Assembly: GCA_026770705.1 (NCBI GenBank)
Contig: JANJGN010000052.1
Location: 3,348,001 to 3,412,000 of the forward strand
Direction of reading: 5' to 3'
DNA length: 64,000 nt
Source: Isurus oxyrinchus
Lineage: Eukaryota
In this document: one piece after another, positions 51,266 to 62,499 of the stretch
Layout of the letters: every line of letters starts with the position of its first letter
How positions within the stretch are numbered: position 1 is the first letter of the stretch
Made by a program: the position numbers and the translations under genes
Notes under the pieces: model-generated
The model's input: only the letters and a program-made list of their open reading frames with translations
Databases searched by the model: none
Told to the model about the DNA's origin: nothing

Positions 51266-51514
51266 TCAGTTTCGCTTGAATCTGATCTGTGCGTATTCCG
51301 TCTCCTCTTCCCTGTGGACAGACGCATCACCACTGGACACCCTGAAGACTTGGGGATTGGCGTAGAGAAGGTTGTCAGTATTGTCAGGGATTCCATGTCC
51401 AGCATCGCCTCCCACTGCACCTTCAGAGAGACCCCGGGGAGCTGGGGTCTCCCCCTCACTAGTTGTGTCTCTGGTTGTGTTCCGGGGCTCAGTAATCAGC
51501 ACGTTCTGTTTACC
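51266..51514 (-). CDS. Siglec B terminal cytoplasmic exon (LLYANP; ITSM TEYAQI)
   Basis: 249 nt, paralogous to 18863-19111. Confidence 0.88.
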   Translation of the reverse strand, partial: GKQNVLITEPRNTTRDTTSEGETPAPRGLSEGAVGGDAGHGIPDNTDNLLYANPQVFRVSSGDASVHREEETEYAQIRFKRN

Positions 51515-51662
51515 CTACAGAGAAATGGAAACAGAAGACATCCTCACATCATTTACTGGCACTGATAGGGTTAAATTATTGTGCAGCCTCGTTAGTGTCA
51601 GTCGTGGCTCAGTGGGTTTAACTGTCCTTCCCATGTCTTATGAAAGAAACCACCTAAGGCAT

Positions 51663-52405
51663 GTGCAGTGCTCCCTCAGTACTGACCCTCCGACAGTGCA
51701 GTGCTCCCTCAGTACTGACCCTCCGACAGTGCAGCACTCCCTCAGTACTGACCCTCCGACTGTGCAGCACTTCCTCAGTACTGACCCTCCGACAGTGCAG
51801 CGCTCCCTCAGTACTGACTCTCCGGCAGTGCAGCACTCCCTCAGTACTGACCCTCCGACAGTGCAGCACTCCCTCAGTACTGACGCTCCGACAGTGCAGC
51901 ACTCCCTCAGTACTGACCCTCCGACAGTGCAGCACTCCCTCAGTACTGACCCTCCGACTGTGCAGCACTTCCTCAGTACTGACCCTCCGACAGTGCAGCG
52001 CTCCCTCAGTACTGACTCTCCGGCAGTGCAGCACTCCCTCAGTACTGACCCTCCGACAGTGCAGCACTCCCTCAGTACTGACGCTCCGACAGTGCAGTGC
52101 TCCCTCAGTACTGAACCTCCGACAGTGCAGCACTCCCTCAGTACTGACCCTCCGACAGTGCAGCACTCCGTCAGTACTGACCCTCCGACTGTGCAGCACT
52201 TCCTCAGTACTGACCCTCCGACAGTGCAGCGCTCCCTCAGTACTGACCCTCCGGCAGTGCAGCACTCCCTCAGTACTGACCCTCCGACAGTGCAGCACTC
52301 CCTCAGTACTGACCCTCCGGCAGTGCAGTACTCCCTCAGTACTGACACTCCGGCAGTGCAGCACTCCCTCAGTACTGACCCTCTGTCAGTCCCGCACTCC
52401 CTCGG
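51663..52405 (+). repeat. 33-bp satellite array (~22 units) in the last intron of Siglec B
   Basis: Tandem units. Confidence 0.95.
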
Positions 52406-52532
52406 TAATGGCTCTGGCGAGTGACGGCTTGGATTCTGCACACAGGTGCCTGGTGTGAGGCTCAATAATATGAACCTTGTAATCAGAGAGAGGATTAGAG
52501 AGAGAGATAGAGATGAAGGGACAGAGACAGAG

Positions 52533-53289: not shown

Positions 53290-53424
53290 GAGAGACAGCG
53301 TGATACTGAACCATTGCTGACTCCACAGGTACAAATCAGTGGGTAACTGGGCAGGGAATCTGGGACACGTGTTGTCTACACACTGAGATTGAAGCTTTGG
53401 AGTGAGTGTAAACAGCTCCTGTAC

Positions 53425-53506
53425 CTGGTGCTTCACAGAGAGTGGACTGGGGGTCAATGCAATGTCACTGGTCCCTGAAACTCTCTCCTCCATCGCTGTC
53501 TTTCTC
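53425..53506 (-). CDS. Siglec B first cytoplasmic exon
   Basis: 82 nt, near-identical to 23996-24077. Confidence 0.82.
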
Positions 53507-53619
53507 CTGCAATAACACAATATCACACTGTGGTTATCATATAGCAGAGAGTCAGTGCAGCACAGAAACAGAGCCCACTGTAACCTTACACCAACGACTG
53601 GACTGTCTCTTTAAATCAC

Positions 53620-54095: not shown

Positions 54096-54613
54096 TAGGG
54101 ATTTAAAATCTCGCAGCTTAGGAAGAAGCCACTCAGCCCATCGTGCCTGTGCTGGCCCTTTGTATAAACTGTCCAGTTAGTCCCACTACCCAGACTGTTC
54201 AATCCTTGTGATGGTTATAACCTCTCAGTTCTGATATCATCCCTGTGAATCTAAATCAGAGAGAGGCAGATACAACGTGGGAATATACAGTTACTTATTC
54301 AAGTCCCTGGAACATTGCAAAGCCGTTCCCGGTGAATGAACCAATCATCGGGGTGTGGTCACTCCGCTTGTGTGGAATCACAAGGTGACCTGATACAATC
54401 CAGGAGTAATCGTGCAGAGTGAGGAATCTCTGGGTCTCGTGATCATTTAACTGGATACAGGACAATGAAAGGTTCTCTCCGGATCATAGTGGACACAGGG
54501 ATCACTTACAGAGAGGGACCTGGTGCTGATCCCAAGGGAAACAATCACCGACTTAAGGAAAGAGCATTGAAGCAAATGTTTATATTAAAATCAAGTTAAA
54601 TCTTCAGACTTAC

Positions 54614-54710
54614 TTTCTCACACAGATGAAGATGAAGATTCCAGCCAGGAAAACACTCAACATGATCCCAGCCGTGAACAATCCTACTGTCCATTTACTG
54701 GAGTCTCTAC
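54614..54710 (-). CDS. Siglec B transmembrane exon
   Basis: 97 nt, same sequence as 24955-25051. Confidence 0.88.
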
Positions 54711-55787
54711 CTGTAAAAACAGCCATTAATTACTGCACTACAGGTTTACAATGATGCTCCGATGTATCTCGAGAAGCGATACACTCACTCAGTGTTTAAA
54801 TACTCATTCTCGGGCAATGCTGACATTTATTGTCCATCCCTAGTTTCCCCTTGAGAAGGTGGTGGGGGGTCTTCCTCCTGAACCACTGGTTTGTCCCAAA
54901 CTGGGAGACCAGTTCAGAGGGCAGGTAAGAGTTAACCATGTTGGTGTTACAGACTGGAGTCACTTATACACCCAGACCTGTTAAAATGGACAGGTTTTCC
55001 TCACTAAATGGACATTAGTGACCCACCCTATACATGTGATCTCTATATACGTATCAACCAACCTCACTAAAATAATCCATTATCAGATCACTGTCACCTT
55101 GTGTGGGATCTTGCTGTACACATTTTGGTGCCGTATTTCCTACATTACAACATGACATTGCTTCAAATATATCTCATTGACTGTAAAGTGTTTTGGGACA
55201 ATCTGATCATTCAATAAATACAGGTCACCCTTTTCAATGTAACAATTATTGATAATTTTATCAATGAAATATTTGGTTATTAATCAAACTCCAATTTCTG
55301 CCTGTTCACTGTTGACTAAAACCTGTCTAGACCCTGAGTCACATGAGGTGATGTTAGGGACAGATGACCTTGTGAAGGGGACATAAGGAGCCTACAAAGT
55401 GACACAGAGTTTTAAGTGAATGGGCAAAATCTGGCAAATAGTGTATAACGTGGGAAAAGATGAAATTGTCCATTTTGACAGGGAGAATAAGGTGAAGCTT
55501 GATAGGTTCTTGATTCACAAAGGGGTGAAAGGTCATCAAGGGTGAGCAGGGAATGTGGGGTTGAGGTTACAATCAGATCATCCATGACCTTATGGAAAGA
55601 TGGAACAGGCTCGAGGGGCTGAGTGGCCTCCTGCTGCTCCTCATTCCTGTGTTCGTATGTTTGTTTCACCAAAAGCTTTGTCAAAGAGATCGGTTTTAAA
55701 GAGAGTCCAAACTGAATGTTTCAACACAGCCCAAAAACCAGGACAGTGATCCAGAGTGATCCAGTGCGGAACTGAGAGATCAGGAAC

Positions 55788-57041: not shown

Positions 57042-57219
57042 CTGAGTGACAGCTGCGCTGTCGGGGGGTCAGTAGGAAGGGAGCTCTGCAATGTCAGAGG
57101 TGAATTTTTATCAATAAAAGCAGATGATCTGTTGTTAAACAAACTGTATTTTATGGGTTTTTACTGTGTAGCATGTGGACTATAATGGCCAATGTAGAAT
57201 AAAGGATGTCTGTACTTAC

Positions 57220-57516
57220 CTTGCACAGTTAGTACGAGGGTCCGCTCCGATGAAACAGATGGATATCTCACTCTGCAGCTGAGAGTGTGTCCGTGGTGTT
57301 TGAGTGATGGGATCAGGGTCAGAACAGAAGTATAGGTCAGAGTGACACCATGCTGAGTTACAGTGTTTGAGACTGATCCAGGTACGTCAGTGGGAGTGTC
57401 CCAGGTTAAGACAGGTGCTGCTGTTCCATTGCACGTTGTGTTGAAGGTGCAGCTTACATCCACACGCTTTCCTGCAATAATTTCAGCAGGGAATATCGTG
57501 GGTTTATCTGTGAAAT
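57220..57516 (-). CDS. Siglec B domain-2 (C2-set) exon
   Basis: 297 nt, near-identical to 38531-38827. Confidence 0.9.
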
Positions 57517-57887
57517 CTAACAGACAGAGAATGGATCCTTTTAGAGAAATATAACGTGAAGCATCAGTTCAAATAGAAACCACAGACCCACAAGAAAAAG
57601 CACTTTTACAAGGATGATATCAGAACTGAGATGTTTCAACGATCCTGATAGACTGTTAGACACAATTAGAGTGATCAATGGAAGTGGAATACATTTAATC
57701 ATTGATATTAAAGTGAGTATTAGAGGTTGCTTTAGGACTGAACTGGAAGCTATCACCAGGTTATTGAGAATCAGACAGCGTGTTATAATAAGCTGTGTTT
57801 TGTGTTAATATGTAAACGTCACAGTTTGTGTTATTTCCCATTGAGTGTTGAATGTGAATTGTTGAGTAATTATAACACAGCACTTAC

Positions 57888-58253
57888 CAGAAACGTGAAG
57901 CTGGGTTACAGGATAATAGTTGTATCTATTTCTGCTGTCAAATTCTATTCTGAAATAATAAGGTCCTGCATCTTCCCGTGTGATGTTGTTTATAATCAGA
58001 GAACAGTCGCCATCTTTCAGGTCTCCAGACAGTCGGGTCCGATGGTGGAACCGTGGTAACTCGTGACTGTGATCCTTGGAGTGAAAGGCTATAGACGATG
58101 TTTCCCGTTCCTCATTATTAAACCAGACTCCACCTCGCGGTTGGTTTTCCAGACACAATGGATAACTGTAATGACACGGAATCTGTACACACGAACCTTC
58201 CTGCACTGTCACCTCTTGTGGAGTGTCACCTTTCCACTCTTGTGAGGGTTCAG
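57888..58253 (-). CDS. Siglec B second V-set exon (V2)
   Basis: 366 nt, open; DAGPYYFRIE with the conserved Arg. Confidence 0.92.
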
Positions 58254-58309
58254 CTGGGGAGAGAAATCTCAATATTTAACTCTGGATGTTTTGTGGATCC
58301 ACTGAACCT

Positions 58310-59140
58310 GATATTTACAGATGAGGCTGAATTGGGGGGATGGTCAATAATGAGGAGGAATGCAACAAATTATATTGTCAGGAAGAATAGAAAAACAGGA
58401 TATTATTTAAATCGAGAGAGGGGGCAGAATGCAGTACAGAGGGATCTGGGTGTCCTGGTACATGAATCACAGAAAGTCAGCATTCAGGAACACCACGGAA
58501 TGAGGAAGGCAAGTGGAATGTTGGTCTTTATTGCAAAGGTATGGAGTATAAAAGGAGGGAAGTCTTGCTACAACTGTATAGGGTGCGATTGTATCAGGAG
58601 CAGTGTATACAGTTCTGGTCTCCTTACTTAGGGATGGATAGACTTGCATTGGAGGCAGTTCAGAGGAGGTGCACTGGGCTGATTCCTGGGATTAAAGGGT
58701 CTGTCCTGTGAGGAAATGTTGAGCAGGTTGGGCCTGTATCCATTGGAGTTTAGAAGAATGAGGCGTGACCTTATTGAAACATATCCGATTCCGAGGGGGC
58801 TTGACAGGGTGGATGCTGGGAGGATGTTTCCCCCTCGTGGGGGAATCTAGAACCAGGGAGCACAGTTTCGGAATGAGGGCTCCCCCATTTAAGACTGAGA
58901 TGAGGAGGAATTTCCTCTCTCAGAGGGGCGCTAGCCTGTGGAATTCTCTTCCCCAGAGAGCAGTGGAGGCTGGGCCATTGAATAGACTCAAGGCTGAGTG
59001 AGGCAGGTTTTTGATCGACAAGGGAGTCAAGGGTTTGGGGGACAGGCAGGAAAATGGAGTTAAGGCCACAACCAGATCAGTGAGAGCAGGCTCGAGGGGC
59101 CGAATGGCCTGCTCCTGTCCCTATTTCTTGTGTTCCTACA
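58310..59140 (+). mobile_element. CR1 LINE 3' fragment
   Basis: QRDLGVLVHES...PFKTEMRRNFLSQR...LWNSLPQRAVEA. Confidence 0.88.
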
Positions 59141-60629
59141 TTCTTACCTTCTTAAAATATTAAAGCTGCAGAATAAACATGCAAGTGACTGACCCGCTCG
59201 ACCCACCTTCCATCTGGGGGTCCCATGGGGAGGACCCTTCCTGAGCCAGATCCACCAGCCAACATGGTCTGGATCCGAGCACAGGAGACACGGGGGGTAG
59301 TGACTAACAGGCTCCTTGTGACAGGCCCCGTCTGTCCAATGGCTGGCTTTCAGCTGCCAAGGCCAGAGTGGTCCTTGCTAAAACCGGCTCAGGACAGGCC
59401 AGGACCCCTGTGCAGACCCCCCCCAGCGCTGCAGCCTCTGTACAAACCCCTCATGCGCTTGTGGAGAGACACAAACAAGGCTGCACATTACCGAGGAGAA
59501 TCCCCTCTACGGACTAAGGGGCTGACTCATCACCTTAAACTGCGCAAATGAGGAGGCTCTCACTCAGTATCGGGGCTTGGCATTCGCTCAGTAAAAATAA
59601 TCAAATGACATTTTGGTCAGAAATCCAAGGAGGTTGTACATTCCCTCAAAAATAAGACTCGATCTGGGGTCGCGGGTCAAAGGGCAACAACTTATATTTA
59701 CACAACAACTTTAACATGACAAATCACCCCAAGGTGCTACACAAGAGTGTCATAAAACAAAGTATGTCACCCAGACACATGTGGAGATATTAGCAACAGC
59801 TGGCCAGAAGAGGTCGGTGTTTTGGAGAGACAGAGAGAAAGAGAAAAAGAGACAGAGAGAGAGAGAGAGAGAGAGTTGGAGAGGTTTCGGGTGGGAATTC
59901 CAGAGCTTATGGTCCCAGGCAGCTGAAGGCACGGCCGCCAATTTTGGAGCGATAGCATCCGGTGATGGTCAAGAGTTTGGAATTGGAGGAGTGCAGTGAT
60001 CTCGGGGGGTTGTAGGTGCTGTAGTTTGTACAGAGGCTGCAGAGAGGCTACAAATTAGGAAAATTTGGAGAGGCTGTAGGAGTTCACAGAGCTAGGGAGG
60101 GTTGTAGAGTATGCAGGAGGTTACAGAGATAGGGAGGGTTGTAGGGGTTGGAGGAGTTACAGTGAAAGGGAGGTGGATGTAGGGACTGGTGGATGTTACA
60201 GGGTAAGGGAGGCATTAGGGGCATGAGTAGGTTACAGAGACAGGGGGTTTGGAGGGACTGGAGAAATTTACAGTGAAAGGGAGGCTTAAGGGGATAAAGA
60301 TGGTGACAGAGATAGGGAGGGTGGACGGGAATGGGAAATGTTATGGAGATAGGGGGTTTGTAGGTACAGGATGGGGTTATAGAGATTGGGAGTTTTATAG
60401 GGAATGGAGGACATTACAGAGATAGGGGTTGTTGCAGCGGTTGGAGAAGGTTACAGAGAAATGGACCGTTGTTGGAGCTGGAAGAGGTTTATGAGGGAGG
60501 GGTGGTTATAGGGACTGAAATAATTTACAGAGATTGGGAGTGTTGTAGGGGCTGGAGGAGGTTACAGAGATAGGGTGGGTTGTAGGGGCTGGAGGTGGAA
60601 GAGGAGATTACAGGGATAATGAGGAAACA

Positions 60630-61610
60630 AAGATGAAAATTTGGACATTGAGACTTTGCTTGACCAGGAGCCAGTCTCGGTCATCGAGCAGAGCGGGTGA
60701 TAAGGGAACGGGACTTGGTGTGAGTAAGGATGTGGTCAGCAGTTTTGGATGGCCTCAAGTTTATGGAGTATGGAGCGTATGTTGGAACAGTCGAGTCTGG
60801 AGGTAATGAAGGCGTGGATGAGGGTTTCAGCAGCAGATGAGCTGAGACAGGGTGATGTCGTGCGATGTTATGGAGGTGGAAATAGACGGTGTTAGTGAGG
60901 GCGCAGATATGAGGCCGGAAGCTCATCTCAGGATCAAATGAGACAACAAAGCTGTGAACAGATTGGCTTCAATCTCAGAGAGCTGCCAGGGAGAGGAATG
61001 GAGTTGGTAGCGAGGGAACAGAGTTTGGAGCGGGGAATGAAGCCAATGGCTTCAGTCTTTCCAATATTTAATTGGAGGGAATTTCTGCCCATCCAGTACT
61101 GGATGTCGGATAAGCAGCCTGATAATTTAGCAGCAGTGGAGGAGTCGAGAGAGGTGGTGGTGAGGTAGAGCTGGGCATCCTCAGTGGACAGGTGAAAACT
61201 AACACTGTTCAGATGATGCTGCAAAGCCATTGCAAGTGATTCTCTGGCTACGATGAGATGGATAAGAGTGGAGCCAGGGGAGAGCAGTCCCACCCAGCTG
61301 GACCACAGTGGAGAGGTGTTGGAGGAGAATGGTGTGGTCGAGCGTGTCAAAGGCTGCAGACAGATCGAGAAGGACGAGGAGGGAAAGTTGACCTTTGTCA
61401 CAGTCACACAGGATGCCATTTGTGACCTTGATAAGAGCTGTTTCAGCACAGTGGCTGGGGTGGGAACCTGATTGGAGGGATTCAAACATGGAGTTCCGGG
61501 AAAGATGGGAACGGATTCGGGAGATGGAAACACGTTCAAGGACTTTGGAGGGGAAAGAGAGGCTGGAGATGGGACGGGGGTTTACACGGACGGTGTGAGG
61601 GGTGGAAGGT
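60630..61610 (-). mobile_element. L2-type LINE RT fragment
   Basis: RPISSLSFPSKVLER...ETALIKVTN...LLVLLDLSAAFDTLDHTILL; LQLNIGKTEAI. Confidence 0.88.
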
Positions 61611-61853
61611 GTAGTGGGGAGGAGATACTTCACTCAGGGGGGAGGTGTCATCACCCCTCAGCTTGGTTTACGTTACAGCTATGATGTGGATTCAATCACA
61701 CACAATAAGCTCATGGATCTGGGAGCAGAAATAGACAAATCATTAAAAATAGTGATGCTGGTTAACACGGCCAAAAAACAAGCAAATCAAACACTATTAT
61801 TTCCCATTGAGTGTTGGATGTGAATTGTTGAGTAATTATAACACAGCACTTAC

Positions 61854-62240
61854 CAGAAACATGAAGCTGGGTTTCAGGATAGTAGCTATAACTATTGTTG
61901 CCGTCAAATTCTATTCTGAAATAATAATATCCTGCATCTTCCCGTCTGATGTTGTTTATAATCAGGGAACAGTCGCCATCTTTCAGGTCTCCAGACAGCC
62001 GGGTCCGATGGTGGAACCATGTTAACTTGCGATTGTGATTCTTGGAGTGAAATGCTATGATCCCTCTAGACCTTGTATTCCATGTATTCCATGTATACCA
62101 TATCACATACCAGATTCCGACACGTGCTCTCCCTACTAAATGTGCTGGATAACTGTAATTACATGGAATCTGTATACACGAACCTTCCTGCGCTGTCACC
62201 TCTCGTGGAGTGTCACCTTTCCACTCTTGTGACAGTCCAA
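61854..62240 (-). CDS. Siglec B first V-set exon (V1, intact); leader exon lies beyond the window
   Basis: 387 nt, open; VGLSQEW...GSCIQIPC...DAGYYYFRIE. Confidence 0.92.
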
Positions 62241-62499
62241 CTGGGGAGAGAAATATCAATATTTTACTCTGTGTGTTTTGTCAATCCACTAGACTCAATA
62301 TCCACCCCCTCCTTCACTGGGGCACAGTGGCTGCAGTGTGGACCATCTACAGGACACACAATGAACTCCCCAAGGTATCACAATAGATGGAAGTGAATCC
62401 TGGAAACAGGAGTGGACAAGTTCATTCTAAATTGGCTCATGGTCCTCAGGACCCTATTTGTGCACAAGCCTGCTATCCAACAGAACTGAATTTGGGGAA

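Follow-up and report, generated by a model that had tools for sequence, protein, structure and literature searches.

The textbook Siglec carries a single sugar-binding V domain, and the arginine in strand F of Siglecs binds the carboxylate of sialic acid. Two N-terminal V-sets ahead of C2-sets, as in the genes described here, are found in mammalian Siglec-12 (human Siglec-XII), which passages of PMC7876704 present as the only two-V Siglec. As to fish, PMC7226832 names only Siglec1, CD22, MAG, and Siglec15 as regularly present and describes fish genomes as devoid of CD33-related Siglecs, with no mention of sharks; in the whale shark genome paper, Siglecs are only named among the expanded families. 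In the stretch of Isurus oxyrinchus DNA analyzed here (GCA_026770705.1, contig JANJGN010000052.1, forward-strand positions 3,348,001 to 3,412,000; the whole 64,000 nucleotides are referred to as the window and numbered from the first letter), the minus strand carries two Siglec-like genes, A and B, in head-to-tail order, each with two in-phase V-set exons ahead of a Siglec-type C2 exon. The inner V domain (V2) of each gene has an extra cysteine in its B-C loop where the outer one (V1) has histidine. This two-V gene layout with its position-specific cysteine is real, and by analogy with known Siglecs, the extra cysteine probably staples the inner to the outer V domain. Our literature search returned nothing on shark or ray Siglecs with several V domains or on a cysteine rule for internal V domains; Supplementary file 9 of the whale shark paper may list some such proteins.

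Paired V-set exons in two Siglec-like genes

The V1, V2, and first C2 exons of gene B span positions 57220-62240 on the minus strand, an interval to which an initial annotation of this DNA had assigned both genes; gene A lies outside it. The V1 exon of gene B (61854..62240, minus strand, 387 nt, phase 1-1) encodes three cysteines, starts with (V)GLSQEW, has histidine in the loop motif YPAH (codon 62142-62140), and carries the F-strand arginine codon at 61917-61915 within YYFRIE. The V2 exon (57888..58253, minus strand, 366 nt, phase 1-1) starts with (A)EPSQEW and encodes four cysteines, including the extra B-C-loop cysteine in YPLC (codon 58155-58153); its arginine codon, again within YYFRIE, is located at 57951-57949. 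The first C2-set exon (57220..57516, minus strand, 297 nt) contributes three further cysteines, namely, the Siglec domain-2 pattern C-x5-C and the F-strand cysteine. Both V exons are open and possess all immunoglobulin (Ig) and Siglec hallmark residues as well as both splice sites. Borders of the form ag/...G/gt and phase 1-1 are common to all V and C2 exons of both genes, so that V1-V2, V2-C2, and V1-C2 joins would each be in frame; V1 and V2 have near-identical strong acceptor and donor sites, and the two V exons of gene B are separated by an intron of 3.6 kb, those of gene A by one of 1.6 kb. In comparison with the other three V exons, V1 of gene B has an 18-nt insertion rich in W, T, and N codons in its C-C′ loop (62060-62150), and a similar loop occurs in the Carcharodon model P0095.

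In gene A, the V1 exon (41211..41578, minus strand, 368 nt) again starts with (V)GLSQEW and has histidine in YPSH (codon 41480-41478), and the V2 exon (39199..39567, minus strand, 369 nt) starts with (A)EPSQEW, with the extra cysteine in YPSC (codon 39469-39467) and the arginine codon at 39262-39260. The contrasting starts of V1 and V2 (VGLS-QEW and AEPS-QEW), the two V exons per gene, and the presence of the extra cysteine in both V2 domains and of histidine in both V1 domains had been noted in the initial annotation and are borne out in both genes. Its further statement that every V sequence retains the strand-F arginine holds in frame for three of the four exons (B-V1, B-V2, and A-V2); in V1 of gene A, one nucleotide is missing near 41465 and an in-frame stop follows at 41414-41412, and this deletion puts its arginine codon out of frame.

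For the family assignment, each exon was searched separately, and database proteins were used for questions concerning several domains. Pfam V-set matched the V exons with values of 3.4e-11 to 9.4e-13 and C2-set_2 the C2 exons with about 2e-9 (2.1e-9 for the C2 exon of gene B); on B-V1, B-V2, and A-V2, V-set and Ig_CD22 both scored above the Pfam cut-offs. Among solved structures, the best matches of the V2 exon were Siglec-10, CD33, Siglec-5, Siglec-8, MAG, and sialoadhesin (1e-13 to 1e-12), with no preference for any single mammalian Siglec. Together, the Pfam and structure matches show that the V and C2 domains are not chance open reading frames. In the alignment with solved Siglecs, the cysteines immediately ahead of strand B, in strand B, and in strand E (C-x4-C ... 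C) coincide, as does the F-strand arginine; specifically, the arginine of YYFRIE, which B-V1, B-V2, and A-V2 all possess, aligns with its counterpart in the corresponding motif of Siglec-10, CD33, and Siglec-5, and C-x5-C of the C2 exon falls on the matching C-x5-C of MAG domain 2. The closest proteins overall are RefSeq models of lamniform sharks; the V2 protein of gene A is 99% identical to V2 of the Carcharodon carcharias RefSeq model P0013. By these sequence matches, genes A and B are Siglec-like, in agreement with the name initially given to them.

Beyond the C2 exon, gene B continues with a transmembrane exon (54613..54729, minus strand; borders approximate, from tblastn), which has an open frame with a hydrophobic stretch and is 77-97% identical to the transmembrane region of RefSeq shark Siglec models. 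A cytoplasmic exon (53401..53526, minus strand; open, borders approximate) and the last coding exon (51269..51538, minus strand; open) follow. The latter encodes LLYANP and TEYAQI and then a stop codon; judged by eye, the proximal LLYANP is not a canonical immunoreceptor tyrosine-based inhibitory motif (ITIM), and TEYAQI resembles an immunoreceptor tyrosine-based switch motif (ITSM). The leader of gene B lies past the window end.

V1, V2, and C2 of gene B contain three, four, and three cysteines, respectively. With this even total of 10, every cysteine can pair, whereas without the extra one the total would be odd and the donor cysteine of V1 would be left partnerless. Disulfides from the V-set to the next domain, to which the initial annotation had appealed as a known Siglec feature, are indeed described in parts of two papers: Cys46-Cys172 from V to C2 in Siglec-6, stated to be consistent with crystallized Siglecs (PMC10122656), and an interdomain V-to-C2 disulfide involving C169 of CD33 (PMC7426717). 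The reading to which we give slightly better than even chances is that gene B encodes a leader-V1-V2-C2-transmembrane receptor with an ITSM-like tail, in which the extra cysteine of V2 would accept the free cysteine of V1, resulting in a stapled rod with two arginine-bearing faces. As a type I membrane Siglec, the protein would comprise a leader, V1, V2, a Siglec-type C2, a transmembrane segment, and a tyrosine-motif tail, and at least part of its transcripts would contain both V exons in tandem. V2 would represent an internal type of V domain, recurrent among sharks and rays, in which a fourth cysteine in the B-C loop is added to the three usual Siglec V-set cysteines. Extrapolating from the known V-to-C2 disulfide, the otherwise unpaired cysteine ahead of strand B in V1 would bond to the extra B-C-loop cysteine of V2, and the corresponding pre-strand-B cysteine of V2 itself would bond to the C2 domain, giving a stapled V1-V2-C2 rod. 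Since both V domains keep the sialic-acid arginine, the head may hold two predicted sugar sites.

The extra cysteine in shark and ray V domains

The pattern was compared across 153 Siglec-like proteins of sharks and rays (RefSeq models with few exceptions), which were collected by three word searches and scanned with a V-domain profile built from the three intact V exons of the window (B-V1, B-V2, and A-V2). V domains were found in 144 of the 153 proteins, with one domain in 122, two in 15, three in 5, and four in 2. The 22 multi-V proteins come from eight species (Cetorhinus, Carcharodon, Mustelus, two Scyliorhinus, Chiloscyllium, Mobula, and Hypanus). The layout with several V domains is therefore not confined to genes A and B and is widespread in elasmobranchs, with two to four V domains, and because RefSeq holds V-V, V-V-V, and V-V-V-V models, the architecture itself is already in databases.

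At the column of the extra cysteine, none of 18 first V domains had cysteine (H in 13, R in 3, N in 1, and D in 1), whereas internal V domains had cysteine in 23 of 28 (otherwise H in 3, R in 1, and E in 1). Single V domains possessed it in 1 of 115 cases, with various other residues in the remainder; the one exception, P0002, begins directly with a V2-type start and is thus probably an N-terminally truncated model. The donor cysteine before strand B was present in all domains covering that position (18/18 first and 30/30 internal V domains), and the F-strand arginine was counted in 21/22 first and 26/31 internal V domains. At the level of sequence, this comparison supports the view that the extra cysteine follows the internal position across the eight elasmobranch species.

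The V exons of the window are also marked by exchange between one another. Downstream of the His/Cys codon, identity between V1 and V2 of gene A amounts to 99.2%, and to 100% in the intron that follows. On the upstream side of this codon, the V1 exons of genes A and B are 93.5% and their V2 exons 96.3% alike. Identity in the 3′ part, as opposed to position-specific likeness in the 5′ part, indicates that gene conversion has homogenized the 3′ part. The His/Cys codon itself is located within the 5′ segment that keeps position-specific ancestry.

Splice junctions and alternatives to a proposed tandem head

Four sequencing runs (of 22 listed), from four studies, were compared with positions 57150-62300. 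Runs X1 and X5 were RNA-like, with depths of about 70-750 in exon bins and mostly 0-85 in intron bins outside repeat-rich stretches; coverage was lower in the bin at the 5′ end of V2, where X5 had none. X20 and X7 displayed no exon-specific signal. Contig depth was also considered as a measure of tandem versus exclusive use of the V exons and was rejected, because it provides no ranking of exons and paralogues have words in common. The V2-to-C2 joint 57516->57888 (GT..AG on the minus strand) was present at depth 473 in X1 and 116 in X5. An X1 contig ending at the V1 acceptor (loose end 62242) runs 12 letters further, and these match the end of the leader exon of gene A. Another X1 contig, ending at the V2 acceptor, runs 11 letters further into the 3′ end of a V exon, forming the predicted junction ...HVS/AEPS.... 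A search of the readable window (peptide pattern with up to 4 mismatches, and blastn) detected no leader-like exon between V1 and V2 of either gene; together with the strong splice sites of both V exons, this means that V2 can be expressed only by splicing from V1 or from a far leader. The initial suggestion that V2 has a linker-like start and is used in tandem with V1 therefore stands as regards the missing leader of its own and the RNA-like V-to-V2 junction, which pertains to the gene family and not to gene B as such.

At 58157, an X1 contig has G for A (plus strand), which changes the leucine before the extra cysteine to serine and leaves the cysteine codon unchanged; gene A and almost every internal V domain from the databases likewise have serine at this place. 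The difference may represent an allele or a paralogue.

Several observations weigh against a tandem, stapled head in gene B and against the generality of the cysteine pattern. The V-to-V2 junction comes from a single contig of a single run and comprises 11 letters; these have C at the place of a T in the V1 end of gene B, and genes A and B do not differ over the first ~36 nt of V2, for which reasons the junction holds for the gene family rather than for gene B specifically. X1 and X5 are guessed to be RNA from their depth pattern, and V1-to-C2 or leader-to-V2 junctions may exist beyond the listed joints (54 joints and 259 loose ends more). V1 of gene A is frameshifted in the assembly. Among the internal V domains, 5 of 28 are without the cysteine (position 2 of P0100, P0103, and P0104; position 4 of P0101 and P0107), which may be mis-chained exons or real exceptions, and three further ones align no residue at this column (position 2 of P0101 and P0107, with a shortened loop, and of P0115, which is truncated). 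The proteins compared are related to one another (paralogues, isoforms, and models from automatic annotation) and do not constitute independent observations. On a V-domain tree computed with a quick method (96 rows and 121 columns, excluding segments of <105 residues and the 57 of 153 proteins without a species code), the cysteine state requires 7-8 changes, 3 of them forced by starred branches, versus about 23 in shuffles; the tree is poorly resolved, with 17 of 89 inner branches starred. A test of independent pairs had one pair on supported branches (eight on all branches) and cannot reach significance, and consequently we claim neither phylogenetically independent support nor repeated gain of the cysteine. 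Finally, as the His/Cys codon is part of the 5′ segment, the cysteine could simply be inherited with that segment.

These points bear differently on the explanations that compete with a stapled V1-V2 head. V1 and V2 might be alternative exons, mature receptors mostly having one V (leader-V1-C2 or leader-V2-C2) and V-V forms being minor isoforms or prediction artefacts. Phase 1-1 throughout means that skipping either V exon keeps the frame, a working product of gene A would have to skip its frameshifted V1, RefSeq contains single-V models of close relatives (e.g., P0019, P0020, and P0002), and no V1(B)-to-V2(B) joint is present among the joints listed. We nevertheless regard alternative use as rather unlikely, given that the X1 contig links the V2 acceptor to the end of a V exon, that introns of 3.6 kb (B) and 1.6 kb (A) pose no steric bar to using both exons, that 114 of the 115 single-V models have no such cysteine, and that V2 on its own would bring four cysteines and, with C2, an odd total of seven.

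It is also conceivable that the V-V tandem is real and that the extra cysteine of V2 serves otherwise, i.e., in an inter-chain bond, in a bond to another protein, or as a free cysteine. By alignment, this residue is positioned in a surface loop, and the bond to V1 is proposed by analogy; such a role would, however, leave unpaired a V1 donor cysteine that is kept in 18/18 first V domains, the extra cysteine follows the presence of a preceding V domain and no other feature seen, and it follows the B-strand cysteine at nearly the same spacing (x6) as the C2 acceptor does (x5). We judge another role for the cysteine to be quite improbable. Still smaller is the probability that we assign to one V exon of gene B being a decaying duplicate like V1 of gene A, with the cysteine difference a product of neutral history. 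The deletion and stop in V1 of gene A and active gene conversion among V exons are compatible with decay, but the open frames, hallmark residues, and splice sites kept in both V exons of gene B, the exon-specific depth at which RNA-like contigs cover both exons in X1 and X5, and the recurrence of the internal-V cysteine in eight species all speak against it. Overall, the exon anatomy, the Siglec assignment, the position-specific cysteine pattern, and the leader-V1, V-V2 (for the family), and V2-C2 junctions are observed, while tandem use of the V exons in gene B itself, the V1-V2 disulfide, and the two binding sites are inferred.

Neighboring features and relation to known Siglecs

The leader coding segment of gene A (45179..45217, minus strand) is the sole leader-like exon in the readable window. 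At 45180-45236 (minus strand), the RefSeq model P0023 matches this region in another reading frame (19/19 residues), which suggests that gene prediction worked around a frameshift in a V exon. The first C2-set exon of gene A (38531..38827, minus strand; Pfam C2-set_2) is accompanied by nine further near-identical C2-type exons at 25866-37880 (minus strand), which show 93-97% identity with residues 238-329 of P0020 and are interspersed with several N runs; no such nine exons exist in gene B. After its C2-type exons, gene A has a tail of the same kind as gene B. A third, distinct Siglec-like gene is represented by a V-set exon at 9919-10227 (minus strand), which shares 90% identity with residues 9-111 of P0111, a Cetorhinus model automatically named Siglec-13. 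Tandem-repeat arrays with a 33-bp unit, 82-91% alike between sites, are located past the final coding exon of each gene; long arrays extend over 19300-23780 and 51660-52420, and shorter ones are found near 38020-38410, 5590-5940, and 13170-13360.

In X1 and X5, a contig at the 3′ end of C2 (57220) continues into an exon that, read by eye, is the start of a short tail. Such a short tail, with an arginine in the membrane segment (activating type), is present in the RefSeq models P0013, P0014, and P0002; the corresponding exon had no match in the readable window. The short-tail transcripts may stem from a paralogue, or the exon may be inside an N run.

A more general proposal, which we put forward as tentative and consider somewhat doubtful, is that shark and ray Siglec heads are disulfide-stapled, multivalent chains of two to four V-sets, each internal slot being filled by an acceptor V subtype with a B-C-loop cysteine and a mostly kept sialic-acid arginine, of an origin separate from primate Siglec-12, and position-specific despite gene conversion. 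If true, chains of two to four arginine-bearing V domains in sharks and rays would provide a natural experiment both in multivalent sialic-acid recognition and in the rigid stacking of Ig domains, with the recurrent cysteine labeling each internal domain as a stacking partner. The rule that an internal V has four cysteines would be testable at the bench and could be used to vet automatically predicted models in which V exons are chained.

Siglec-12 is the RefSeq name of several shark V-V models, assigned automatically. As opposed to Siglec-12, the shark genes belong to an elasmobranch expansion in which V1 and V2 have each other and further shark V domains as nearest relatives, and shark and ray models reach three and four V domains; an origin of the shark two-V Siglecs independent of mammalian Siglec-12 is plausible. 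The CD33-related Siglecs and MAG share with the shark genes the V-set cysteine pattern, the F-strand arginine, and C-x5-C in domain 2, whereas the shark genes have a second V inserted between V and C2. The solved single-V Siglecs that were aligned are without an acceptor-like B-C-loop cysteine at the position occupied in V2. Relative to the published fish repertoire, the shark cluster represents a large CD33/MAG-like expansion with both ITIM-type and arginine-in-membrane tails. In this respect, it recalls the paired inhibitory and activating Siglecs, a paradigm treated in parts of PMC13358205. Like the shark genes, the pairs Siglec-5/14 and Siglec-11/16 have near-identical ectodomain exons kept alike by gene conversion. 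The genes of the window have a long tyrosine-motif tail, and P0013, P0014, and P0002 together with the RNA-like contigs display the same C2 with a short arginine-in-membrane tail; in contrast to the mammalian pairs, this pairing is seen in relatives and contigs and not in gene B itself.

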